A stretch of DNA of 64,000 nucleotides, from assembly GCF_023055435.1 (NCBI RefSeq), contig NW_025963791.1, positions 30,256,001 to 30,320,000 on the forward strand, read 5' to 3'. Source of the stretch: Haliotis rufescens (lineage: Eukaryota). A program made the translations under genes and the position numbers. Each line of letters opens with the position of its first letter. Positions within the stretch are counted from its first letter, which is position 1. Below the pieces are notes generated by a model. That model was given only the letters and a program-made list of their open reading frames with translations. It ran no database searches and had not been told where the DNA came from. Shown here piece by piece: positions 45,293 through 62,857 of this stretch.

Positions 45293-46171
45293 CAGTCAGG
45301 TCTCGTTAATCCGACAATCGGCGTTATCCAACAATATTTATATATGTGTGCTTCTAGGATCTGTTTCTGTTTGTGTGTATACATGTATATGCCTGAGCGA
45401 ACCGTATTGTGCAGACGGGATATGATGGTATGTGTTGTGTATAGTTTCTTTTATCTCTCGTCATTTTCCAGAGGGTCATTTTCAGTTTGCATTTCACACC
45501 ATATCTCTTTTCATATTACACACTTGTCTTCCTTATTCCTCACAAGGCCAGTCAAGCCGCAAAAGCGATATTTGCACGGGTCCTTATTAAAGACTCTAAC
45601 GGACGCAAAATACGACAAACATGAATATGTTACATATATGCATGTAATTATACTCAATACCGTATTCGACGTAATAAGCGCCCCTCTGTAATAACCACCC
45701 ACGGCGATATTTGCTGATATATTGGCTAGTGAACTATCCCAATTAGCACCCCTTCCGATTGATCAGGGTACACAAGACTTATTTCTTTGCGTATAATATA
45801 ATGTGTTATATGCACCCTTAGCTATGAGTAATTGATATCTGGAAAAATATATCTATCGTACATAAACATTTCAGGCTTTCACCATAAATAACATATGTTA
45901 TATTTGGGATAACACTTTCTTAGTAAAGTACAGATTCTAGTACTTTTTGGGGGTTGAGTCCCGTACGGGATTCGAACCCACACCTGCCAGGGTGAGGCAC
46001 CTAATCGCCAGCACACAAAGCGAAGAAACATTTTCATCTTTAACCCCATTTTACAACCTTGTGCAAGTGTACGTTCCACTTCAATTCGAGAAATGATACA
46101 ACTAACTCTCACATTTCTTAACCAGTTTTACCTCCAACCTATGCTGGTGCTAACCTAATAGACACTACTAC

Positions 46172-46512
46172 TACCGTATTCGACGTAATAAGCGCCCTGC
46201 TCTAATAAGCGCCCACAGCGACATTTGCTAATATATTGGCTGGTGAACAATCCCAATTAGCATCCCTTCCGATTGATCAATGTACACAAGACTTACTCAT
46301 TCGCGTATAATACGCACTCGTGTGTTATATGCACCCTTAGTTATGGGCTAATAAATTCTGGATTATATATATTATATCTGTCGTACATAAATACTTCAGT
46401 CTGTAAAAAACACGAAATTTATCTTTCAACTCTGTTTTTTACACCAAAATAATATTCTAATAAGAGCCCCCTATTTCCAATTTCCTGGGCGCTTATTATG
46501 TCGAATACGGTA
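46172..46512. mobile_element. Complete MITE with TIRs of about 26 bp and TA ends (Tc1/pogo type); partial copy at 45658-45878
   Basis: taccgtattcgacgtaataagcgccc ... gggcgcttattatgtcgaatacggta. Confidence 0.92.
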
Positions 46513-47231
46513 ATTCAGACCAAACCTGTGGCTGTCACTGACTTCAGTTGACTTTCTGTTGAAAAGGTTTTGGAAATAAACGCATTTCCCGAATCAGCCG
46601 TGTTTGAGAAAAAAAATGTAACGAGGCTTAAAATAGATTAAATTCTTCATTTGCAAAATGTTTTGTTCAGGTTATAACCTTTGTGTATGTGCCTACCTAT
46701 GACATCACATCACTGTCATAGCGGGTAACCGAGCGTGATGACACATACACAGTGTCACGATGAATCGTTATCATAACATTCCCCAAGGCCAGCCCCACGA
46801 CGTGTATAACGTGATAACTAATTCCCGAGGAATCAGTTTCAGATTACTTGAAGTAGACGAGTTGTAAAATGAGATATTGAACCTGCTTACAAATGACGTT
46901 GTACTAAACAGGTTTGTAACTGAACCACGTATGACAAGGCGTAACAAAGGTACACCTGAATCACCAATACATCCATAGAAATGATTAAGTTGAGTTTTTC
47001 AAAACGGTTAGTCGTGGAAACTCAAAACGAGATTTGACATGTTAAGTACAAAGTAACACAGTTTCTTTACAGACTCTAAAATATTCCTATTCATTAAAAC
47101 AGTTCATTTGAAGTGAAAGGAACAAAGTTGTCACGATCACGAATCCTCTTTCAGCAGTCCTTCACGACTTTTTGCCTTAGTTTTGACGCCCATTTCTTGA
47201 ATATAGTCTCTTAAATTGGGAACAGTTATGC

Positions 47232-49406
47232 TCACGGATCAGCAGGTTGAACCGCTTGACTGTTTATTTCATCCAGTTTTGCTCGCTTTGCGCTTCGAAC
47301 TTCACGTATCTCCTCATTCCAGTATTTAGGTCTGCGCTTGGTGTATTGTCGCTTGTCTCTTTTGGACTTGGAACTTTCTTCCATGCGTTTGCAGATCTGT
47401 AGGGCCTCCACGGTGGGGTCCCACTTGTTAGATTTCCGCTGATGTATTTTCTTGACAACATCATTGTGCTTCTCAAATGCTTGGCAGCTGAATTTTCTCA
47501 ATGTACCAAATTTTCGTAGCATAAACGGTACGTGGTACACCATGCAATGAACATAAGGGGTTACGTTCTTTTCAGTGTATCCTGATAAGTGAGGGCCAAG
47601 TGACAAGAACGTTTCTACCCAAGTTTGTGATAACTTGAAGACTTCTTCTGCTCTCATGGGCTCAGAGGCGGTAATGGTGCTGTAGATATCGTCTAACAGC
47701 TTCCACAAGCTTAGGACTTTCTCCTCAGTGTTTGATTGAAGCTTCCCTTTCAATGCTTGTGGAAGTTTAGACAGAAGTTTTCTTTTTTCCAGCCCATTCA
47801 AACTTGTCCATTTCAGTTTCTTTGTTTCCTTTTCCTCCCAATAAGAAAATGGCACCCCACAGGATTTGATAGCCTTTACAAGTTCACCCATATGTTTAGG
47901 GTTCTCCTTCACTGCTGCACGCTCTTTATCTCGAGTCATTGCATCATTTATCAGGTTCTTCTCCAAGACGTCCGTAATCCGGAGCAGGAGATGCAGCTCA
48001 TCCAGAATAAAGTCCTCCATCTCTATTTTCAGGAAAGGAGTATGATGGACCCCATACTCGCGTTTTACAGCATGTTCTGTTACTCTTTGCCAGTTCCTCA
48101 TCATGTTGTCGCTGTTGAAGTAGTCCAATGGGTGTGTCATGTTGTGCCTGTCATCCCTATGCACTAAGCACCAAGGACAGGAATGATTGCAAGAGACTCC
48201 CCCAAGCCCCATCATTGTGAGGATCATCTTCATGTCAGCACAGAACACAATATTAACTGCTATCTCCTTGTCATCAATATGAACTCGCCCTGCTTCAATG
48301 ACTGAGTTAATTTCTTCGCATAGAGGCTGTAATGAAGTTTTGAGTTTGAAATAATCTTCTCTGCAGTTTAAGATAGCCAGAGTTATGACGTTATCAGCAC
48401 TGTGATTATCCGTGTACGTTGCGTCTACCAACCGAAAGGCAAATATTACGTAGTTCGATATGCGACTTACATGGGTTCCATCACTGCTTAATTGAACCAT
48501 GACTTCCTTCAGATTTGGGTTTTCAAGTATTTTTTCCTTCAACCTTTTATCTAGTTCCTGTCTGAAGCTAACCATCGCTCCATTAACTTCTCCTGGCACT
48601 CGACTGATGGCGAGAGTGGCAGTCATTTCTCGACGGGTATTTATCACGGAATGAGTGCGTGGTAGATTTGGATATAACTGTGTAATTTCATGATAGGCAG
48701 CCTCGCTTACACAAAACCTGTCCATGACACCGACGAGAGAGCGGAGGCTATCACACGTAGACCCCGACGATTTATCACCTTTATTTTCAAAGTTGATTTG
48801 AACCTCTTGTCCACAGGACGAAGTACTGATGATGGCTTTGGGGACCAGTTGATACTGGGTGAGAAAAGACAGACTCTTCTTGGATTGTTGCTTGATAAGT
48901 GTCCGTCGTCGATGCTGTTGGCGCTTGTTCAAATCGTCATAATTCTCCTGTTTCTTAGGAATACTTGCATCAGGTTGACACCTAACTATTTCTAAGGATG
49001 CAACCTTATCCCAGTCAAAATAAGACAAAGGCTCATTCGGATCAACATTTTTGTTCACCAATTCATTTGTGAACAAGGCCAAAGAGAACGTTTGAGTTTT
49101 AAGAGTGTGCTTGTTGCTATCTTTAGTTTCATATCTTTTGCAAACGTCTAAACATTGACAAAGAAGAGTTTGCTCAATTCTTTCACTCTGCTGTAGCCTT
49201 GTCTTTGTGAGCTGTGTATTGAGCAGGTCGATCATGGAGCAAGTTTCATTTATCTCCTTGCTGATTCGGAGGTTGACCATAAAGGGGTAGGACATTTCGA
49301 GGGACACTGTTCCTACCCCTCCTCCATTGTTTTTCTTTTTACTGGGGCGTGGTCCTGAGGCTTGACTTTTTGGAATTATATTTCCTAGATCTGTACTGTT
49401 GGACAT
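47232..49406 (-). CDS. RAG1/Transib-like DDE transposase, intact 724 aa
   Basis: Ordered motifs LNKRQQHRR, VSEAAYHEI, SSDGT, CADMK..MMGL, CPWC, LDELHLLLRI, LNGLEKRKLL, TPYVHCMVYHVP and FSCQAFEKHN parallel RAG1 LTRRAQKHRL, LSCSQYHKM, DG, YDEK..VEGL, CTLC, IDALHCDI, MNGNFARKLM, TNYFHKTLAHVP and WASEGNESGN. Confidence 0.85.
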   Translation of the reverse strand: MSNSTDLGNIIPKSQASGPRPSKKKNNGGGVGTVSLEMSYPFMVNLRISKEINETCSMIDLLNTQLTKTRLQQSERIEQTLLCQCLDVCKRYETKDSNKHTLKTQTFSLALFTNELVNKNVDPNEPLSYFDWDKVASLEIVRCQPDASIPKKQENYDDLNKRQQHRRRTLIKQQSKKSLSFLTQYQLVPKAIISTSSCGQEVQINFENKGDKSSGSTCDSLRSLVGVMDRFCVSEAAYHEITQLYPNLPRTHSVINTRREMTATLAISRVPGEVNGAMVSFRQELDKRLKEKILENPNLKEVMVQLSSDGTHVSRISNYVIFAFRLVDATYTDNHSADNVITLAILNCREDYFKLKTSLQPLCEEINSVIEAGRVHIDDKEIAVNIVFCADMKMILTMMGLGGVSCNHSCPWCLVHRDDRHNMTHPLDYFNSDNMMRNWQRVTEHAVKREYGVHHTPFLKIEMEDFILDELHLLLRITDVLEKNLINDAMTRDKERAAVKENPKHMGELVKAIKSCGVPFSYWEEKETKKLKWTSLNGLEKRKLLSKLPQALKGKLQSNTEEKVLSLWKLLDDIYSTITASEPMRAEEVFKLSQTWVETFLSLGPHLSGYTEKNVTPYVHCMVYHVPFMLRKFGTLRKFSCQAFEKHNDVVKKIHQRKSNKWDPTVEALQICKRMEESSKSKRDKRQYTKRRPKYWNEEIREVRSAKRAKLDEINSQAVQPADP

Positions 49407-49600
49407 CTGTAAGGGATAGGAACCTGCGTTTTAATGAGTCAGCGTGTTAAGACAACGTAACTTGCGTGGTGTTTCTGACGATAGTACTTGCGTCAGTTCG
49501 ACTACACGCACAGAATGTTACACTTCCGAATGGCTGTCATAAACTGAAACTGAAACAGAGAAAGTACCATTGAGACTTTAATATAGCGTGAGAGTCATGT

Positions 49601-49726
49601 GTGGTGAGGTTAAATGGGGTTTAACGTCGCGTCCAAGATTATTGCACTTATATAGCGACGTGAAAGCACGTGTGTGTGTGCAGCGGGTTGTAGAAAAAAC
49701 AAAGCCCGATGCTCTTTGACACGTGT

Positions 49727-49771
<45 letters not shown>

Positions 49772-50020
49772 AGGGGTGCTTGAACGAGTCCGGACTGATG
49801 CCGAATATATAGCGCCAGCCCACTGAGATACAATGCCGCAGTTTAACACGAATACCCGAATCACATACAGTATACTCCGTGCCGACAAGTTCTTGTTTAG
49901 ACCCAGACAAGGTAACAAACAAGTACCAACTTTTAACGTCTTTTGGTACGACGCGGCCTGGGACCGAACCCCAGACCAACCGCTCTCGGGGCGGATTGTC
50001 TACCATTAGACCACGGAGGC
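49601..50020 (-). mobile_element. SINE family D with (GT)n and poly-G tracts
   Basis: 10-bp TSD agagtcatgt at 49591 and 50021; homologous to 20352-20710. Confidence 0.88.
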
Positions 50021-50126
50021 AGAGTCATGTAAATAAGAAAATATTTATGTCGTTTTTTTGGCAAATGGTTTTGTGTATGCGGGTTGTAGAAAAAACAAAG
50101 CGCGATGCTCTTTGACATGATGCCAT

Positions 50127-51152
50127 AGTGAGTGAGTGAGTGAGTTGGGTTTAACGCCGCGTTTAACATTATTCCAGTTATATCACGGCGTGTCAGCTTA
50201 ATGTGGGAGGAAAGCCCACAATCAAACCAACAATCATAGGTTTCTGGCGTGCCCAGGGGACGCAACTCTGCACAACGAATCGCGGCGCAAAAAACGACTG
50301 GGCCACCAGAAATGACGCCGACAGATGTTTTAAGAAATCAGCTACACACACACCACAGGATAAATGTAGTCCTGTTTTATTGTATCGTAGATTTGTTGTT
50401 CTTTCGACCTTAAGTTAGTGGTCATGGATGATCTGCTTGCATAAAACACCACGATGTGGCGACTTGTGACTCTTATCTGTGCAAATATACGCTGCCTGCC
50501 TTACACAGGCACCCAACCCTGCTTCACAAGCCGACAACCAACACTCTACAGTGAGACCCCTTTAATCCGGACCGTGGCTGGTTACAAAAGTTTGGATTAA
50601 CGAGTGCGTGAGTTTGGTTAAACACAGCTGTCTGCAGTATTTATCAAAGCGTGTCAGATTCATGCAGGTCTCAGACGTTTACCAGTTTGGAGAAACACTT
50701 TGGTGTTATGAAACCTAAAGCCTAAAACCTAAAACCGAAATCTTGGCTTCCAACCAGCGACCATAGGTTTCTGGCCCGCTCAGCGAAATGTGGCGCCTCG
50801 GACGAGCAGGTCACACGATTTCCCCTCGGATCAACGAACGATTCAAAGGCATAGGGTAATATGGTACATGCGGCAGATGACCACAACTGTCATTGACAAC
50901 CATAGTCGTCTAAGGCGCCGCGATTCGCTGTAGAGAGTTGCATCCCTTGGGCACGACAGAAACCTATGATTGTGGGTTCGAATCCCGGTTCGCCCCGATT
51001 ATGTTTCGAGGTTTATCAGCACCATGTCAGCTCGTAGGTTACACCGAAGTGGTAAACGCCTGAGACCTACATCACTCCTCCCCCATTCAGCTGACACGTC
51101 GCGATATAACTGTAATACTGTTAAAAGCGGCGTTAAACTCAACTCACTCACT
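50127..51152. mobile_element. Cluster of SINE family B copies: 50127-50307 (-), about 50605-50820 (-, degenerate) and 50903-51152 (+)
   Basis: Matches to the family B head and tail. Confidence 0.8.
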
Positions 51153-52019
51153 GACAATCATAGGCCTGGCAAAAATGTATTTTCCTCTGAGTGCATATAT
51201 AGAGTTACTGGTAACAACATCTCTAGTGATGGTTAAAATAAGACACACTCACGTTTACAGTTCCTTGGGTCATGAGAACACAGGTGAATTCCAAACAGGT
51301 TCCTCGAACGCTGTTGTAAATTGATACCAGATTACTTACGCAGTACTTGAAGTATGACGTTTGTTTCCTTATCAACCTATAAACGTGTGCATAATAATAC
51401 CATAAAACAGGATCAAACATGTCCATTAACTTTCTATTGCCTTTTAAAATTAATCGGCACAGATATATGTAAAGGTTTCAGTAGCATGGCGCTGCTTAAT
51501 CAGGAGTAACACACGTAGCGTGAAACTTTTGAATCCAATGCGCTAGTTACTATACACCGACCGTACTGCTCAATCAAAGTATTGAAATGTAGGATGCGTT
51601 GCATGAATTGAATGATTGGAACTATATCAATGAGGATATAAAATGTCACGTGGTATAACTATGTAATCGCAACAATTTATTGAGTTCCAGGAACATGATT
51701 GTTCATTTGTACATTTGGCGTTGAACTTTATCCGTGGACCGTAGGCGGATAAAATTAATTATTCTCGTTTGATAATAGAACGAATATCTATACATATATT
51801 TGCGGATTGATAAGATAGAGAGGTTTGTAAGATGTATGTACAATCAAACACCGTATTCATTCTATATTCCCCATCATCGGTTGTGTCGCACCTCGGATAA
51901 CACGTATTTATGTAGGTCCCTTCAACTTACATATATACATCGACAGACGGGGAGATTGGCATTGGACAATAACCCATTGCAATGAAACTCACTCATTGTC
52001 CGACAAATTTATGTAAATG

Positions 52020-52760
52020 CACGTGGTCGATATACTGGGTGTATCGGAGGTGACGGTTCACGAGGTCATCTTTGAGGGGCTATGCTGTCCACATCCTGGA
52101 GGTCGGAGAGATGTCGGTTCACGAGGTCATCTTTGAGGGGCCACGCGGTCGACATACTGGAGGTCGGAGAGATGTCGGTTCACGAGGTCATCTTTGAGGG
52201 GCCACGCGGTCGACATCCTGGAGGTCGGAGAGATGTCGATGAACGAGGTCATCTTTAAGGGGCCACGCGGTCGACATACTGGAGGTCGGAGAGATGTCGA
52301 TGAACGAGGTCATCTTTGAGGGGCCACACGGTCGACATTCTGGAGGTATTTGGGTTGGATGTGGAGATCTGGGTGGTGTCAGACCATGAAGTCATCAATG
52401 AGGGTCCACGTGGTCGACACACATACTGGAGGTCTGAGAGGTGTAGGTAAACGAGGTCATCTTTATGGAGCCACGTGGTCGACATATTGGAGGTCGGGGA
52501 GGTGTTGGTTTACGAGGTCCTTTTTTTTTGGGGGGGGGGGGGGGGGGGGGGGGGGGCACGTGGTCGACATACTGAGTTCTGAGAGGTGTCAGTTCGCGAG
52601 GTCATCTTTGTGGTCGACATATTGGAGGTCGAGGAGGTGTTGGTATACGAGGTCATTTTTGGTCTACGTGTTCGACAGACTGGAGGTCGGGGAGGTGTTG
52701 GTTGACGAGGTCATCCTTGTGGAGCCAAGCGCTCGACATATTGGAGGTATTGGAGGTCGC
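52020..52760. repeat. 61-bp GC-rich minisatellite, about 11 copies, degenerate at the edges
   Basis: ggtcgacat recurs at 52147, 52208, 52269 and 52330. Confidence 0.92.
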
Positions 52761-53788
52761 ACGGTTTAAGGGGCCTGTGGTTGCCGAACAAGAGTTCATG
52801 GAGGTCATGTCGTCGCATCAGGCTGCAACTGAGAATTATGCCACTTTGATACTATCAGTATGTCATTTTTATTAATTAATTAATTATTTTATCAATGGGT
52901 GTAATCACAGATACCCATGTGTGGGAGCTGGAATATAAACAACTAACAAACAAAACTAAGATTGTTATTCATTCTACATGACATTGATTCTGATTGGTTA
53001 AAAAGAGGTTTCCTTTTGCTACAGAAACCCCTTTCAAATATACTAAGCAACTTCACGCACAAAAAACGTGCGTATTAATACATCGATAGCTGACAAATCG
53101 ATTCATTAAAAAATGTCTGCCGATCGATCACCCCCATATGAACTGTAAAACTATCTATATTTCCTCTATTACACGCCAGGTTCTTAATGCACGCCAGGTC
53201 TCTAATACACGCCGAGTCAAGGGCTCTCGGGAAAATTAATAGACGGCCTCGCGTCTAATGGAGGAAATACGGTTTGATATCGATGTTTTTGGCGTCCTAG
53301 CTAGGCCGCGACCCTGACTGCCACGGTGTTACATTACAAGATTTAACGAAGGCATTTCTTTTCCATACAAATAAAATGTTTATGAAACTGGAAGGGGCAT
53401 TCTATGGCGACCAGAATCGGAACAGTCTATTTCCTCATTGAAACAACCGGTTAGGGAAAAGTTAATCATATTTCCTGGTATTCGTTTGCATTTTCGTTTT
53501 ACTGATTCGTAGAACTACGTTCAAGTTAATTGTTATACCTAAAATAGACTTTGTTTAATCGGACTCCACTTCCGTGTAATATGTTCACGTGATAGATAGT
53601 AATGGACAAGACAGTGTAGGAAGTATATATTTGTGCACAATACACTTTTCAGAACATTAATAGAATATTAAAAAATACTATTAAGTAAACCTGACTAAAT
53701 TTCTTTTCCTAGTACTTTTCTCGGATACAACGTTTTAACATTCCTCCGAGTTATGCCAAGATAACCGAATGGTCGGTTATTAAACACG

Positions 53789-54067
53789 GTGGCACGGGTG
53801 GCCCAGTCGTCTCAGGCGCCGCAATTCGCTGTGCATAGTTGCGTCCCTTGGGCACGCCAGAAACCTATGATTATGGGTTCGAATCCCGGTTCGCCCCGAT
53901 TATGTTTCTAGGTTTGTCAGCACCATACCCGTGCTCGTGGGTTACACCGAAGTGGTAAACGTCTGAGACCTGCATCACTTCGGGCTTTCCTCTCACATTA
54001 AGCTGACACGCCGTGATGTAACTGGAATATTGTTAAAAACGGCGTTAAACCCAACTCACTCACTCAC
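53789..54067 (+). mobile_element. SINE family B
   Basis: 11-bp TSD ttattaaacac. Confidence 0.92.
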
Positions 54068-54211
54068 TTATTAAACACACTGCATCACACTTCGTACACT
54101 TTGATACCTGCAATGCAATACGTGCACTGGTACATGCAAAATTACATACTGAGACAGTGAGTGAGTGAGTTGTAACAAGTCCCAAGCACGAGAATCTGAT
54201 GGCACACAAGT

Positions 54212-55414
54212 TCAGTAGCGTGTATGGCCATGTGCGTTGACAACTGCCACACAACGCCTCCGCATGGACCTTGTGATGCTTGTGAACACATGATTGGGAA
54301 GACGACGCCATTGTTGCTGCAAAATGGTGCCAAGATCTTGCAAATTATGTGGTTGGTTCTGGAGGGTGCGCAGACTTCTGGCAAGAGTATCCCAGACGTG
54401 TTCGATGGGATTGAGGTCGGGGGACTTTGACGGCCAGTCTATGACGTTGACTCCCGCATTCTGAAGGAAATTCCTTGTCACAATTGCTGTGTGGGGTCTG
54501 GCAATGCCGTGTTGGAAGATCAAACCGGGTCCATGTGCTGCCATAAAAGGCAGAAGTTCTGGTCGCGGTAAGCAGCAGCGTTGAGGTTGCCACGGATGAC
54601 AAAAGCCTGGAACGTGCATTGCCACAGAAAGCACCCAACACCATGACACTTCCGCCTCGAAATCTGTCAACTTCCTGTACACAACACTGGGCGTAACGTT
54701 CATGACGGCGCCTCCACACCCTCGCCCTACCATCAGCAAATCGAAGTTAATTCGGGATTCACTGAAGACGACTTGATTCCAATTCCTCTGAGTCCATCGT
54801 AAGTGTCGCTGTGCCCACAATTGAGTCAGAATCGGCCCGCAGTATGGCCGTCGTGCTTGAAGGTGAGCAGTTCTCAGACGGTTTCGAACAGTTTGCGCAC
54901 TCAGTCTACCCTTAAACAGTTAATTTCTGGTTAATGTAGCCGTCAAAAATCGGTTGCGGAGGTGACGTAAGCCAATCTGACGATCCTCTGCATGTGACGT
55001 CACACGTGGTCGACCTGGCCGAGGGCGATCAGCGGTGGTACCCGTTTGCTGTAGACGCGTCTGTAAATCATAAACAGTCCGTCGACTACAACCCATCGTC
55101 CTTGCGACTTCAACTACAGACGTTCCCGACTTTTCTTTTCTTGTGTTTTTCTTTTTTTGTTAATGACTGCTAACAAATATGGCTGAAAACACGTGCGGTA
55201 TTATGGCCACGTGACCAGTTGCACGTGAAAAAACACTGTTGCCATTATAGTGCTGTGCACATGATTTTGATCGATTCATTTGCACAAAAACAGGTGTTAT
55301 CTGAAGACAATGCGTGGCCATTACTGTTTAAATACACAATAAGGGCCCACAATGAGAACTGGTAAAAAATGTTAAAATTTTAGGATTGTGAAGTTTTTAA
55401 TTTGGTTCAGTATA
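54212..55414 (-). mobile_element. Decayed Tc1-family transposon
   Basis: DRPRPGRPRVT, VVFS-ESR (first D lost), FQHGIARPH (second D lost), WPSKSPDLNPIEHVW and GHTRY; frameshifts; tatactgaac-type terminus at about 55414. Confidence 0.9.
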
Positions 55415-56877
55415 TTACTGATGAAACAAACACAAACCTGCTGACAATACAGTGGATACAACAGGAAAGTCATATATTCCGAGACTGGTCTAGCTATGCA
55501 GTGTGCGTGATAAGGGCCAGACATCATATTATCTGACTTTGATAGTATCTCTACATTTTGCCTTGGAGTATGATAGTAATGAAATTAGATGGGGATTTTT
55601 ATCTGATTTTGTTCCCTGTTTCTGATTTCTGAGAAGGGCAATGACAATACGTTATCATGTCGATACCTTCCATTTTAATAAAGCGAACGGAATGAAAACT
55701 GCTTTCTTGCTCCTATATAGGTTTGCGATACAGGTGTAGCACAAGGTTCGTCTTTGTTGTTTAACGCCGCAGAGATAGCACAGCTATGGGCAAGATAACC
55801 TTGTGATTGACATCATGCAGTTGACGAAGCTCGACATCTGATCAATAAGTCGCCTCTGACAACAAGCATGGGTTGCTTGAATCTATGTTCTTATCCGTAA
55901 TACCCACTTGTCGAGTCATAATAGTCAAATTATTAAAATAAACTTTACGATTTGTATGATAGCTATTGAGATCAAATAAAATGTCTTTGTAACACAAACA
56001 TAAAATAACGAAAGTTTCATTAGAACTTGAGTGTGGGTTATGGAACGCGCACTGTATGCAAATGTCTACATTCAATTTCATTTTCACGTGACTGGAGTTT
56101 TGATTTTCTGTAATACTCGACAGTTACTACTCTTCAATGTTGAACAGGACATTGCATGTTCTTGTAAACTGTACTCGGCATTCTCGACTCGTTCAAAATA
56201 AATAAGCATCTTGCAATTGTCCACACTTGATTATATTACTTAGTAAACCTAATCAATAAACCCCGGCTCTTCTTTATTCTGTATGACAAATTGTTTATGA
56301 TAAGGCTGAATACATACTTTACTATGGCGACCAAATATAAAATCCTGAACTGGCACAGACCAGACGCTTTTAAGATCAATACAACTGGTCGTGGACCGGT
56401 GATAACTAAAGTTGCATGTTACTCTGTCCAGCATAATAGCGTTTTCAGGTTGATGGGGTACGGGTATGTCTATTTGTGTAACGTTGCACACAGACGTCGG
56501 GCTCAGGGAGAGTACGTTTACCCCCATACATTACACGTGACCTCTCGGTGTACTAGTGGTAGCTCAATGTTTGGACTACATACATTTGATGATAATGACA
56601 ATAAATAAAAAATAGTTATTCCATGGCATTTGATTGGCTGACCAAGAAAATGTTGTTGTTTTTTCGTCTATGTTTCTATAAACAGACAAACAATTAGGCC
56701 GCGCCCATTTGCGGCCTGGCTGGGCGATGCTTTGGTTGTATCATTAATATTGCGCTGAACAAGATGAATGATTAATATAAATAAGCAGTCTTTAAGTTAT
56801 TTAAGTGATTCAAGTGTAAAGGGATATAATCACTGTCTCATTAAGAGACGCTGTAATATTATTCTGTTAATTAATAT

Positions 56878-57050
56878 GAGTGAGTGAGTTGGGTTTAACG
56901 CCGCTTTGAAAAGTATACGAGTTACATCACGGCGTGTGAGATTAATGTGGGTGGAAAGTTCGAAATGATGCAGGTCTCAGGCGTTTCCCACTTCGGTTAA
57001 ACTCAAGAGCACGGGTATGGTGCTGACAAACATAGAAGCATAATCGTTGC
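56878..57050 (-). mobile_element. SINE family B fragment; another at about 58432-58650
   Basis: Tail (GAGT)n-gggtttaacgccgc and body gagcacgggtatggtgc. Confidence 0.8.
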
Positions 57051-59070
57051 GAACACGGTTGCAATCTTGTGGGCGGTGGGGTCTAAGGTGCTGATTTTAC
57101 ATCTACAGTATTTTCACTTTGGCGACACCAACTATCATGCTGTCATAGTTGAATCAAGATTAAAAAATCCCTAAAAGAAAGTGGAGCACACATCAAAGGG
57201 CTTCTAAATGTGCCTTGTTTGGACTTACGTGAGTACTTGTTAATCAACACTATTGCTGGAATCTTTCTGCATACGCAATTAAGTTTCCAAGAAAATGTCA
57301 AAAGTGCAGTGAGACTGGAAGAAAATAGGGTGCATGAACGTCAAACGTCGTACAACATTACACATGCTACACATCAAACTTCATGATGATACTTTGACAT
57401 GGCTCGTTCATTCGAGCAAATGACATTGAATGTGAAAATGGCCGCCGGTAAGGCCATGTTTAAAATCGGGTCGAATAATGGCAGCACTGTTAGAGATACG
57501 ATACCTGAGATCATTAAACGTTCAGATTGATAGGCCTAGTAGTTTCAGAGGAGATGTCGAATAACGAGAAGAAAGAAGTTTCATTCAGGTGAGCTACTAA
57601 TTAAGAAAAACTTATGAAACTTCACTGAATGCATCCTATTGTTAAGATGACGTAAGGCAATCAACTGAAGGCTCAACAATGAAGTGTTGTGATTCCATAT
57701 GGCTTCAGGGGGCACGGGTGGCTTTTCGCATCGTACGGGGGTGGGGAGGGGGTTGGGATCGAACCAGGGTCTTCGGCATGACGATCGCCAGTGAACACTG
57801 TGACCACGGTGCCATACTAGTAACTGAATCAGTAGCAGGCAAACCCGTGGTTGAAAGTTGGAGCAACGATGCACGACGATGGAGTGCCATCAAACACCAT
57901 CAGCCACAATACAAAGACACAATTAGCATTTAGTTTGTACAGTTAAACACCGTTCAGTCGAACGTACGCTTTTCCATGCGTATTCGTACGTTATTCATTA
58001 TTTTCGGTTGTGTCAAACCTCGGATAACTTGAAGTGTTTACGTAGGTCCCTTCTAACTTTTGGACGTCCAATCAAAGATCCCACTTCAATCGAGCAGTGG
58101 GCAACTCATCTGCTAGAACTAGTGAAACCACGTGCCCTGAGTAAACTTGACTTTACCATCGATTACCATGTACCTGAACAACAGGAAAACTTTGGAGAGA
58201 TCGGTGGTTTATGGAAGAGTAAGACAAGAGTAAGGCTTCCTTTGCAGTCATTCTTATTATCATTAAAAGCAGGTTCCCAAGCCTTTGTGCTAAATGTCAG
58301 ACCGGGAGGAAGAAAGAACCTTAAGTTTAAAATCTGTCAAAAATCGGAAAGGTCCATTTATCATATCGTATTATAAGAGAATATCCACAATGTCATATTG
58401 TAAAGACTTTATCCAACATGTCATATTGTATAGTGAGTGAGTGAGTTAGGTTTAACACCACTGTGAAGAGTGTTTCATTGTGTATCACGGAGTGTCAGTG
58501 TGACGTTGGAGGAAAGCTAAAGTGATGTAGGTCTTTGACGTTTACCACTTTGGTGAAATCCACGAGCACGGGTATGGTGCGGAGCAGAGACACCAAGAAA
58601 CATCACCAGTGCAAATCGGGGATTCGAACCCACAATCCGAGGTTTCAGGTGTGTGTCCCATATTGTAAAGGGTTAATTCAGAATTGTAATGAAATATTTC
58701 ACACCTACAGCTGTACTGAACATTAAAGTACATGTGATTCAGGGTCGAATGTGTAAGGCCGAATCCCAAATTGGTGGAATATTTTAAAACATTCAGATAT
58801 GTCACGACTAACCATTTGCGAGTTTGACTTGTCTTGCAGATACATAAATAGTACTTATCACATGCAACAATCCAACAAAACAACAATCAAACAAGAGTGT
58901 TAGGTTATTGATTTATTTGACGGTCGTCCATGAATTGTATCTGATTTCGAAATTCATATTATTTATCATGTGTACATTTCATCTATAGAGGTGGGGTGTG
59001 TATGGGGGTAATAATGACAGGCGGATGTAACGAACAAGCAGTTAGAGAGGTCTCCATATGCATCCAGTCC

Positions 59071-61307
59071 CTATGTGTTGATAAATTCCTTGATCTTCCC
59101 ATCACCAGTCACAAATATGGAGCCATGTTTGTCCGACCAGAGACCTTTTGGAGCGCGCACACCATCCTGTAACGTGAGAACATCTCTGACATACTCCCCC
59201 GACTCTGTCAGCTGTATCACCTTGTTGGTGTCCCTGTCTACAAGCATGATGTCTCCTGTGCCTGTAGTTGAGATACCATAAGGGAAGCTGAGTGCTCTGT
59301 CTCCGGTAGGGGCGTATCTCCACACAACATCCCCCTCTGACGTCACACATGTCACGGACTTCTTCTCCCAGTCAGACACGAGTATGTTGCCCTTGTTGTT
59401 GACACACATGTTGAAGGGGTAGGTAAACAGTGTCTCAATGTTGTGTGTAGTGACTGACTTCAGCACGTGTCCCACCATGTCCAGGATATCAACACAGCCA
59501 CAACCACCTGCTGCTAATGATGAATGACTCAGAACAGCGAGACTGATGTAACACTTGCTTGTTGTGATGGTAGAGAGCAGCACCAGGTCAGGGGTCACTT
59601 CTACTGTTACAATCTGACTGGAGTCATGGACAGCAACCATCACCTGGTTCCCCTTCAACTGTGTTAAACCCCATGGAGAGTTAACCAGGGGAAGTCTACT
59701 TTGACATGGTTGATTGTTTGTAGTGTAGAAAGATTTCACACACTTGTTGGAGCAGTCAGTGACAACACATGTCTGTATACCATTTACATGCAGGACTGTG
59801 ACGTCACGTAGATCAGGTTTCTCCACATCTCCCTCCACCCTGCCGTTAGTCGTGTCAACCATTACCGGAGAAGATTTCCGACAGGTTTCAGTCTGGTATG
59901 TGACGTCAATCTTCCCCAGCTGTAGGTCATCTAAGATGTGCTGGGCGTTGTCAGAGTCAGGTGTAAACCTGATGTCATCTATTCTCCTTGTGTCTGCTGT
60001 GTCTGTGTCCCTGACATCCCCCAACTCTACAGCCCCCGACTCCCAGGCCTGATACGCGTCATACAGGTCCATCTCACAGTCCGATACCAAGGCCTGGTCA
60101 ATGAACTCACAATGTTGTCTGTACATCTGCATCTCAATCTCTTCAAGCTTTATAGCTGCCCGAACCTGAGAGATATGAGTATCTGTTTTTGCATCCAATT
60201 CATCTAACAGCTTCTTTTCCTTGTGCTTGATGTGTTCGACGAGTCTGTTTGTAGTTGATCTGATGTGTTCTTTTACGGACGCTTTATTAGCTTTTATTTC
60301 ACTTACTCTTGATTTTTGTTTTTCTATGTTTTTGCTTTTACCAAAAAGCTTTTTCTTAAGACCATTGACTTTACGAGATAACCCAAGCTTTATCCTCGTC
60401 ATCTGAGAGCTGATTGTGACGACAGAGTCACATTTCCTGTGGTAGACCACACAGCATGACTGACACAGTGACTTTTTGCAGTCCAGACAAAGATATTTGA
60501 CTTGCTCAGACCTGTGTTCTTGACACATGACCTTGCGTCTCTTCTTAACCTTCACCCCTTCAGACAGGTCACACAATCCATGGTCACGAGAGCCAGAGCT
60601 AATACGGTGTATTTTGGCACATCTACCACAGAGGGTCTCTTCACATTCAGGACACCAGGAGGTCCCCGGAGTTGTCTCCCCTAGTCTGTCACACAAGGAG
60701 CAGTTTTTGTTGGTGTCATCAACTGCGAATGAAATCGTCAATAGCTTAAATGTGTCCTTCACATTACATTAGCATGTAATAATATAACAGAATACCTCAA
60801 ACTATACTACAACAGACATGTAACATATCACAAGTAATGTGAGGAAAGGGAAAATTATTCCATTAAACCCATTTCATAATCATCCCCAGCACTTGCATGA
60901 TAGAGATCTCTCTTTATGTGCTTACAGATTACTTTATTATAACCTCCACAGTCATAATTATTATTTCCACTAGCTTATTGTGTGGATTAACAAGACATTG
61001 TCGCACCTGCCGTTGTGGTAGCAGATTCCTGTGTGTCAATCAGCCCCTGTATAATGATGCTGGGTTTGATCTGCCCCGCCCACTCCTCCACTGGCCGGGT
61101 GGGGTGGGGGACCTTGGTATCTTGTCGACAGAAGGCACAGGGGATCGTCTTGGACTGTACTGCATCTGGTCTGGTTTGGATGTATCCTGTGACACATTTC
61201 CTGCAGAATGTGTGATCACACCTCAGTGTACAGGGGTCTGTGTACAGTTCCTGGCAGATCACACAGGTGAGGAATTCTCTCACTTTCTCAATCTGGGCTG
61301 TGGCCAT
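59071..61307 (-). CDS. TRIM E3 ligase (RING, two B-boxes, coiled coil, NHL-like beta-propeller); exons 61307-61007 and 60722-59071
   Basis: RING CVIC..CDHTFCRKC..CAFC; B-boxes WCPECEETLCGRC..H..H and CQEH..CLDC..CQSC..H; NHL-like repeats PFNMCVNNKGNILVSD and PYGIS..GDIMLVD; phase-1 intron. Confidence 0.92.
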
Positions 61308-62857
61308 CTGGAAAACATGAAATATCCACAGATGCATGTGAATAGTACTTTCTAGATTGGTGTCACCATAACTGGAACATGTCTTACAATATGAATAGTT
61401 CAAGTTCTGTAAAGGCTCCTACTAGTCTCATAAAGAGATACGACAAGGACAACGTTCTGTCTTCTGGTGATGTTAATATTAGCAGTTGCTGAATTCCAAG
61501 CCCGCCAATGTGACCTGCCTATTGTTACTTAAGGCTGTCTCTTATCTCTCCAGTTGTGTATACCTCATCTTTCTTTCTTTTGCTACAGTACGACTTTGTG
61601 TAACGTGTGCTGATAGCCTCATATAAATATAATACTAAAATACTGACATCACACAAATTAATTTTGTTTTTATGAAGAAAATGACTTCGGAGGTACTTCC
61701 CTCACATAACATATACAGGTCTATAGCAATTCAAACAAACAATCAAGTGGGTTTATATATTCCAACCGTATTTAAGTTATATATTTAATTTGACATTATA
61801 AATAATGCTGATGACATGACAACATTTCGTACATGCAACTGTTGTTACTCTCTTTACATTGAGGCTACAGTATGTACAAACTAACAGATAGGTGTGACAG
61901 CTATTTTCTGGTTGCATTTGATTATTTCCGTCTATGGAATAGTTCTAGCCTATTGCTACATACATGTACATGCACGTGTAGGAAGACAACATATACTAGT
62001 ATAAATGACCCCACAACCCACTCTTTAACAAATGTACCACGTTTGTGTTGGGCATCCTACATCCTACATATAGTAGTAGCCTACATCATAATAACAATAT
62101 CTATCCTATTTACAGAAACTGAATGAGGAAATGTATGCATATGATTCTGAATCATTGTTATTTAATATGCATTAACAAAGTAAACATAAGTATGTACATG
62201 TAGTAACTTTGGTGTCAACTTATGACAATACCGACGTCTACAAGAATTGTTCCTCAGCAGTGTATTTCTACTTTCGGTTTCTCTTCAGCTAAAGACATGG
62301 AGTCTCACCGTGTGGACAGACAACAATCACCAACCAAGACAAACACAAGTACACTGTTGAATACACGACGGAATACATACCCTAAACTCACAGGTGATGT
62401 TTTCAATACTACTTCATCTGTTGACTGATTCTCCGTCTTGATATTTCATGCTACTAGTTTGGCAAAGCTTTCCGCGAAACTTCCCCGTCCTGACACACAC
62501 CGCCCTCATACATCCAAGGGAGGTAAGTGCGGGCGAAACCTCAACTGACACAGTTAGGCTAGCGATACTGAAGAGAATATTCGTTCTAGGATCGAATCAC
62601 TAAATAGGCCGTCAAACTTTTACAGCAATATCTCTACTGTAATGAATATATTATTTAGTAAGTGAGATAATTTGAACACGAAACAAAACAATGTGAAATT
62701 CAAAGATATATTTGAAATAATTCTGACAAGTTAGAGTTGTCATTAATTTTTATTAACATTTAGGAGATAAATATTTCGTTTTGTAAGATTTGCGTGATGT
62801 TATGCTGAATGGATGTACGGAAATTTCATTAAAAATTTCCGTACGGTGCTCCAATGA

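Follow-up and report, generated by a model that had tools for sequence, protein, structure and literature searches.

The 64-kb window analysed here (G000:C13:30256001-30320000 of the 1.33-Gb Haliotis rufescens assembly) carries on its minus strand, at 47232-49406, a 724-aa open reading frame (ORF) running from ATG to TGA, which encodes a transposase-derived protein related in fold to RAG1. An earlier reading of the letters alone (hereafter the original prediction) had reported a stop-free frame of 724 codons at this position; the frame is present, and public protein collections hold an identical 724-aa protein. The remaining ORFs between 40 and 64 kb are shorter, the next-longest encoding 563 aa and the others 202 aa or less. 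Proteins of the family have a RAG1-fold core preceded by an N-terminal coiled coil and, in the ancestral state, followed by a SAP-like tail at the C-terminus; the window gene, termed copy A, is a derived paralogue without that tail. Coordinates of all features are collected in Table 1.

Searches of Pfam and the Protein Data Bank with the single protein sequence returned only noise, and profiles were therefore needed. With a ten-member profile, ten RAG1 entries ranked first (best E 0.0037), and a 54-member profile reached zebrafish RAG1 at E 6.1e-9 and BbRAG1L at 2.9e-8; the HzTransib chains were not among the matches of the latter at E<=1 and were recovered by fold only. The original prediction had proposed a structure comparison with RAG1 and Transib, and both were indeed among the matches of the predicted model that, together with RAG1L, were best by far, the top hits being RAG1 and BbRAG1L. 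The aligned portion of RAG1 (~460-1008) is taken here to span the dimerisation/DNA-binding domain, pre-RNase H, RNase H, ZnC2, ZnH2 and the C-terminal domain. An NBD-like helix claimed for the window protein finds no support, because the structural alignments start past the nonamer-binding domain of RAG1.

The active site of this core is conserved among relatives. Specifically, D309, D391, K393, C410, C413, H472, R476, H620 and H625 are invariant, and E645 nearly so, in 54 members sharing 18-34% identity; these residues include those of the D (SSDGT), D (CADMK), E (AFEKHN), CxxC and HxxxxH motifs picked out in the original prediction, all of which are present. The DDE triad and a CCHH zinc site occupy RAG1-equivalent positions, as aligned by HMMER for the second D, CxxC, HxxxxH and E, and as judged from strand position for the first D. 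D309 is accordingly labelled a probable counterpart of the first catalytic Asp of RAG1, on the basis of its place in a predicted β-strand rather than a residue-by-residue alignment.

Outside the core the family departs from RAG1. The N-termini of relatives give weak coiled-coil-type Pfam matches, and this region showed no conserved Cys/His column, no member with two or more CxxC motifs, no zinc finger and no RING match; given the missing Cys/His column and paired CxxC, the Chapa/NZD finger of Chapaev and RAG1L is absent. The C-terminal SAP-like tail is intact in copy E of the same clade, in the mobile elements X and Y described below and in many relatives, two of which match Pfam SAP weakly, below threshold. 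Compared with copies B, C and D, copy A lacks 1 bp, which cuts its frame short, and a donor-like 'gtgagc' noted at the stop codon turns out to be the scar of this frameshift. A role of 'gtgagc' as a splice donor was rejected in view of the deletion and of the downstream +2 frame, which still encodes a remnant of the tail. The acceptor proposed directly before the ATG fared better: 'ttacag' is present in copies A, B, D and E, although the rest of their upstream DNA is unalignable, and is absent from the mobile elements X, Y, W and Z. A 5'-untranslated region (5'-UTR) intron using this acceptor may thus have been acquired in the ancestor of the Haliotis clade.

These features bear on the family to which the gene belongs. 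Catalytic motifs common to EnSpm/CACTA, Mirage, Chapaev, Transib, Plavaka, ESTA, Lanisha and RAG1 mark the CMCT clade, whose elements have 5'-CA..TG-3' termini and target-site duplications (TSDs) of 2-5 bp (PMC12730594). Kapitonov and Koonin placed Chapaev inside a broad Transib superfamily, with an N-terminal Chapa zinc finger described (PMC4411706) that is 'consistently retained' in Chapaev (bioRxiv 10.64898/2026.01.24.700457), and Pfam DUF1280, which corresponds to Chapaev transposases, clusters with RAG1 (PMC3985635). The window protein possesses the motifs that the CMCT clade shares and matches neither Pfam RAG1 (PF12940) nor DUF1280. Among the 54 members, three touch Pfam RAG1 (best E 1.3e-3) and two match DUF1280 (best E 3.2e-7). 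The best relatives score E 1.3e-3 to 0.01 against Pfam RAG1 (~14 bits, cut-off 25), abalone element X being at E 0.01, and abalone element W reaches E 6e-4 against DUF1280 (19.9 bits, below the cut-off of 25). Genome-wide, the Pfam RAG1, RAG2 (PF03089) and DUF1280 models gave no match, a result for which the search controls cannot prove absence. In the protein atlas, a cluster bearing DUF1280, hypothetical proteins of cnidarians and RAG1 clusters all occur among the relatives. Failure at both the Pfam RAG1 and the DUF1280/Chapaev thresholds points to a distinct lineage rather than to RAG1L, and we provisionally file the family as a distinct, unnamed CMCT lineage between RAG1/Transib and Chapaev. 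The family call of the original prediction, RAG1/Transib-related, therefore holds for the fold and the active site; it is weakened insofar as the motifs are CMCT-wide and Pfam RAG1 failed.

Compared with RAG1 and RAG1L, the window protein has the same core fold from the dimerisation/DNA-binding domain through the C-terminal domain, but it is only ~15-18% identical, falls below the Pfam RAG1 cut-off, lacks an NZD/RING N-terminus and a RAG2/RAG2L partner, and leaves the nonamer-binding domain unmatched; its family instead has an N-terminal coiled coil and, ancestrally, the SAP-like C-terminal tail. Transib elements typically carry terminal inverted repeats (TIRs) resembling recombination signal sequences (CAC...) and a 5-bp TSD. 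HzTransib lies beyond the reach of the family profile, and the mobile relatives here are two-gene elements ending ...GGGTATG. Chapaev is another CMCT lineage of animals, and its transposases are stated to cluster with RAG1 (PMC3985635). Two of the 54 members and, below the cut-off, element W match its DUF1280 model; the window protein itself has no such match, and the family has no N-terminal Chapa zinc finger.

The family is large and includes mobile members in the abalone itself. An exhaustive profile search recovered 8,385 representative clusters with E<=1e-3, of which 716 reach E<=1e-30, and fragments are common among them; one cluster from Ixodes scapularis consists of many scattered partial copies. 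The abalone genome has 66 profile matches, spread over many contigs at some 35 or more places; long open frames are kept in at least 13, and many others have stops. Four subfamilies (X, Y, Z and W) look recently mobile, and several are young and dispersed: the two X copies (L026/L027) are 99.7% identical over 4,179 bp on different contigs, the Z pair (L032/L033) is 99.8% identical, and the Y copies (L028, L029, L030, L036) are 97-99% identical. X and Y have in common a sharp 13-bp 3' terminus, ...ATTCTTGGGTATG, beyond which the flanks are unrelated. This sequence occurs 75 times in the genome as an exact match, versus ~21 for a control, and it ends ...TG. A genome-wide exact search found no inverted partner of ATTCTTGGGTATG nearby, implying that the 5' TIR is imperfect.

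All four mobile subfamilies possess a second gene, ORF1, which immediately precedes the transposase gene and has the same orientation. The 177-aa ORF1 of X matches Pfam Chromo (30 bits versus a threshold of 25.1), that of Y is 35% identical to it, and those of W and Z match MSL3-chromo-like and Tudor-knot. ORF1 and the transposase ORF lie in one frame in X, Y (L028) and W, with stop codons between them, so that a single product might conceivably arise by read-through or splicing; the longer family members showed no chromodomain-transposase fusion. The transposases end in a SAP-like tail in X and Y and in a CCHC knuckle in W and Z. A chromatin-reader partner recalls the PHD finger of RAG2. A limited literature search revealed no paper that links chromodomain genes to Chapaev, Transib or EnSpm, and no paper on such genes in Haliotis.

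The window gene falls among these elements in a Haliotis-specific clade with exactly five members in the H. rufescens genome, comprising the array of copies A-D and copy E (contig C113, LOC124130947). A maximum-likelihood tree takes the form ((X),(Y,(E-clade, A-clade))) with supports of 96-100. The A-clade contains copy A, copies B and D and one H. cracherodii protein, and the E-clade contains copy E and, for each of H. cracherodii, H. rubra and H. asinina, a single protein, grouped in a species-like manner as (rufescens, cracherodii) and (rubra, asinina). Each E orthologue has two predicted transcript variants that encode the same protein. Between A and E only the coding sequence is shared (47150-49412, 76% nucleotide identity). 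The truncated 724-aa form is also found in two H. cracherodii proteins, indicating that the truncation predates the species split. In H. cracherodii, the A-type P0001 and P0178 and the E-type P0002 all lie on a record of equal length (82,358,895 bp), presumably a single chromosome, so the A-type lineage may stem from E by intrachromosomal duplication; in the H. rufescens assembly the A-type copies and E are on separate contigs (C13 and C113).

At the window locus the search for the 3' terminus motif, the inverted-repeat scans and the lack of an ORF1 show that the transposon ends and the accessory gene have been lost. The inverted-repeat scan found no inverted-repeat or TIR pair bracketing the ORF, in agreement with the original prediction, and the ...TG terminus of X and Y is absent at the gene, its motif being not above chance around A or in the 20 kb around E. 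The latter result matters because the tree distance from X to Y exceeds that from Y to the Haliotis clade. No remnant of the chromodomain ORF1 was found in the 64-kb window or around E. A RAG2-like partner had also been reported missing, and we concur: the ORFs examined from 40 to 64 kb include none of kelch/RAG2-like type, and no genomic match was returned for the RAG2 Pfam model. Many near-identical copies with shared TIRs, which the original prediction took as a sign against domestication, characterise the sister lineages and not the Haliotis A/E clade.

The way in which the array multiplied also differs from transposition. Copies A-D all sit inside 240 kb of a single contig and share one orientation, and a 15.9-kb unit around copy A recurs at B, C and D. 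The two ends of this unit do not form inverted repeats (8/60 matches), and the homology among B, C and D continues past both of them; the unit is a segmental duplication. A large composite transposon was considered and rejected for the same two reasons.

By the Nei-Gojobori method, dN/dS between A and E is 0.24 at a dS of 0.79, with values of 0.17 for the core and 0.43 for the N-terminus. The array copies A-D diverged in place; the 57 events counted among them are 29 nonsynonymous and 28 synonymous, against a neutral expectation of 79% nonsynonymous, corresponding to an omega of 0.28 (binomial p 2.5e-6). In addition, the noncoding flanks of A-D show 5-6% mismatches plus indels versus ~2% in the coding sequence (CDS), which is 2-3 times more conserved. 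Purifying selection has thus acted on the array copies after immobilisation.

Table 1. Positions of the transposase-derived gene, its domains and residues, and associated features (window coordinates unless a locus is named)
Feature	Position	Strand	Basis or remark
Intact CDS, transposase-derived gene, copy A of five-member Haliotis clade, 724 aa	47232..49406	-	ORF; identical public protein
RAG1/Transib-fold catalytic core, residues 215-687	47346..48764	-	aligns to RAG1 residues ~460-1008
D309 codon, first catalytic Asp (probable)	48480..48482	-	invariant in 54 members; β-strand 301-312 of predicted RNase H-like fold
D391 codon, second catalytic Asp (predicted)	48234..48236	-	invariant; HMMER aligns to Asp of RAG1 'DEKMV'
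C410-x2-C413, predicted zinc ligands, 19 residues past D391	48168..48179	-	invariant; HMMER-aligned to RAG1 'YICTLC'
H620-x4-H625, predicted zinc ligands	47532..47549	-	invariant; HMMER-aligned to RAG1 'YLHKTLAHVPE'
E645 codon, predicted catalytic Glu, 20 residues past H625	47472..47474	-	nearly invariant; HMMER-aligned to Glu of RAG1 'EGNESGNK'
N-terminal region, residues 1-214: low-confidence segment, coiled-coil-like helices, conserved basic helix	48765..49406	-	model and weak Pfam
Out-of-frame remnant of ancestral C-terminal SAP-like tail	47137..47217	-	cut off by 1-bp deletion just before TGA 47232-47234
'ttacag' abutting ATG, candidate splice acceptor of 5'-UTR intron	49407..49412	-	kept in copies A, B, D, E
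13-bp terminus ATTCTTGGGTATG	L026:4167-4179, L027:4167-4179, L028:3822-3834, L029:3821-3833, L036:3270-3282, L039:3811-3823; L030:806-818 (-)		X/Y
Upstream ORF1, chromodomain-type gene	L026:472-1005, L028:415-891, L031:79-921, L032:294-1064	same as transposase	Pfam
Segmental duplication unit, 15.9 kb	46172..62072	.	common to copies B, C, D on same contig, 87-99% identity; ends not inverted repeats
341-bp miniature inverted-repeat transposable element (MITE), 26-bp TIRs (TACCGTATTCGACGTAATAAGCGCCC), high-copy family	46172..46512	.	edge = left breakpoint of duplicated unit

Taken at roughly 60% probability, our preferred interpretation is that the window gene is an immobilised, selection-maintained transposase gene and a candidate for domestication, rather than an unrecognised live element or a decaying relic. 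Of the two alternatives in the original prediction, a host-domesticated gene is favoured at this locus by the missing ends and partner, the segmental duplication and the purifying selection; a young element of a related family describes the sister lineages in the same genome and not the window copy. Several observations weigh against the preferred interpretation. Copy C has a 1-bp deletion that shifts the frame at codon ~68, as well as G400W, the only substitution at an invariant residue within A-D. The SAP-like tail was disabled in two independent events: A carries the 1-bp deletion, whereas B, C and D have lost 8 bp and gained 1 bp. Some of the purifying selection seen between A and E could be older than the immobilisation, and the loss of ends is judged from the 3' terminus motif, the inverted-repeat scans and the missing ORF1. 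Erosion of this kind would be expected of an immobilised relic that is becoming a pseudogene, with the open frame and low dN/dS reflecting a lag and no present function; the A-clade stem is also longer than the E-clade stem (0.24 versus 0.14), and RefSeq-derived collections list proteins for copies A and C and not for B or D. However, the strong deficit of nonsynonymous events in A-D and the conservation of CDS over flanks are at odds with simple decay, the full-length frame and every invariant residue are kept in three of the four array copies and in E, and the 724-aa form shared with two H. cracherodii copies has persisted since before the species split, which leaves the relic an unlikely explanation.

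Another possibility is that the gene belongs to a low-copy autonomous transposon, or one immobilised very recently, whose ends went unrecognised and whose ORF was kept by recent selection for transposition. A divergent end could have escaped the 3' motif search, large size is not unusual for CMCT elements, every catalytic residue is intact and the sister lineages look recently mobile in the same genome. Against this, the 13-bp terminus is missing around A and E although X and Y, which are further apart than Y is from this clade, have it in common, and the chromodomain ORF1 of every mobile subfamily is missing as well. Moreover, the 15.9 kb shared by A-D includes a host-type TRIM-NHL gene and has no inverted-repeat ends, the omega of 0.28 was measured among copies diverged in place, and each species has one E-type gene, in a species-like topology; we rate this explanation improbable. 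Far less credible, and largely refuted, is a true RAG1L gene of the RAG-like transposon lineage that would be a direct relative of vertebrate RAG1 (ProtoRAG, protostome RAGL). RAG1 and BbRAG1L are the best structural and profile matches, and the motif spacing is presumably the same as in mouse RAG1 numbering; but neither the window protein nor any relative tested attains the cut-off of Pfam RAG1, the genome has no match to the RAG1 or RAG2 model, the N-terminus has no zinc finger or RING, some members lean to DUF1280/Chapaev, and the partner gene in the mobile relatives encodes a chromodomain protein rather than a kelch/PHD protein.

Under the preferred interpretation of an immobilised and retained gene, the ancestor would have been a two-gene transposon with the chromodomain gene followed by the transposase gene and an end of the ...ATTCTTGGGTATG type. 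The Haliotis offshoot would have lost this terminus and the chromodomain gene, multiplied thereafter only by segmental duplication, gained the splice acceptor next to the ATG and, though no longer mobile, stayed under purifying selection. If it works as RAG1 and Transib do, the protein may still bind DNA as a dimer, hold a structural zinc through C410/C413/H620/H625 and cut DNA by two-metal catalysis via D309/D391/E645, producing nicks and possibly hairpins. The window protein would be unable to mobilise itself; having no ends of its own and no chromodomain partner, it would act in trans, with related element ends or host DNA as the target, or would regulate its mobile relatives. Without the SAP-like tail, copies A-D would lack one module presumed to tether the protein to DNA or chromatin.

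Domesticated DDE transposases include RAG1, THAP9, PGBD5, SETMAR and FHY3/FAR1. The window gene resembles them as a solo ORF without ends, at low copy and apparently vertically inherited, that is under purifying selection and has kept its catalytic residues; it differs in being a candidate and in that part of the A-D array is eroding.

The duplicated unit contains further genes and repeats. A 563-aa intact ORF (59071-60762, minus strand) encodes two B-box domains, a PML-like coiled coil and NHL repeats, and is of TRIM-NHL type with no RING detected; it was co-duplicated with the transposase-derived gene. A 202-aa ORF fragment (54212-54820, minus strand) matches DDE_3 (Tc1/mariner-type) and is a decayed transposase, in keeping with the statement of the original prediction that the other transposases of the window are dead, for which this is the one case checked. 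The 341-bp MITE is also found at 45658-45888 and 19949, with dozens of copies in the genome at 87-96% identity. A SINE-like repeat with a GGGTTCGAATCCC motif, which we take to resemble a tRNA T-arm, lies at 50132-50299, 50904-51155, 53797-54068 and 56877-57054; copies occur in both orientations, forming long inverted pairs upstream of the gene, and also at the start of L026.

The classic domesticated transposase is RAG1, and we know of no other established co-option of its fold. Here, more than 8,000 protein clusters form a family that has no Pfam model and is annotated only as 'uncharacterized protein', and one genome presents both states of such an enzyme: (i) young two-gene elements with defined 3' ends, and (ii) a genus-wide derivative that lacks ends and partner and is under purifying selection. 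It is possible, and we suggest it tentatively, that abalones, in an independent event, co-opted a RAG1-fold transposase with an intact catalytic site from an undescribed two-gene chromodomain transposon family, the products being the LOC124130947 lineage and its amplified tail-less paralogues. In that case a chromodomain reader of histone marks would occupy the accessory place where RAG transposons have the PHD-bearing RAG2, pointing to a chromatin-reader partner other than RAG2. If true, this would be a second, invertebrate example of RAG-type domestication, with the mobile ancestor alive in the same genome for comparison, and the fate of a RAG1-fold enzyme after transposition stops would become testable in an invertebrate.

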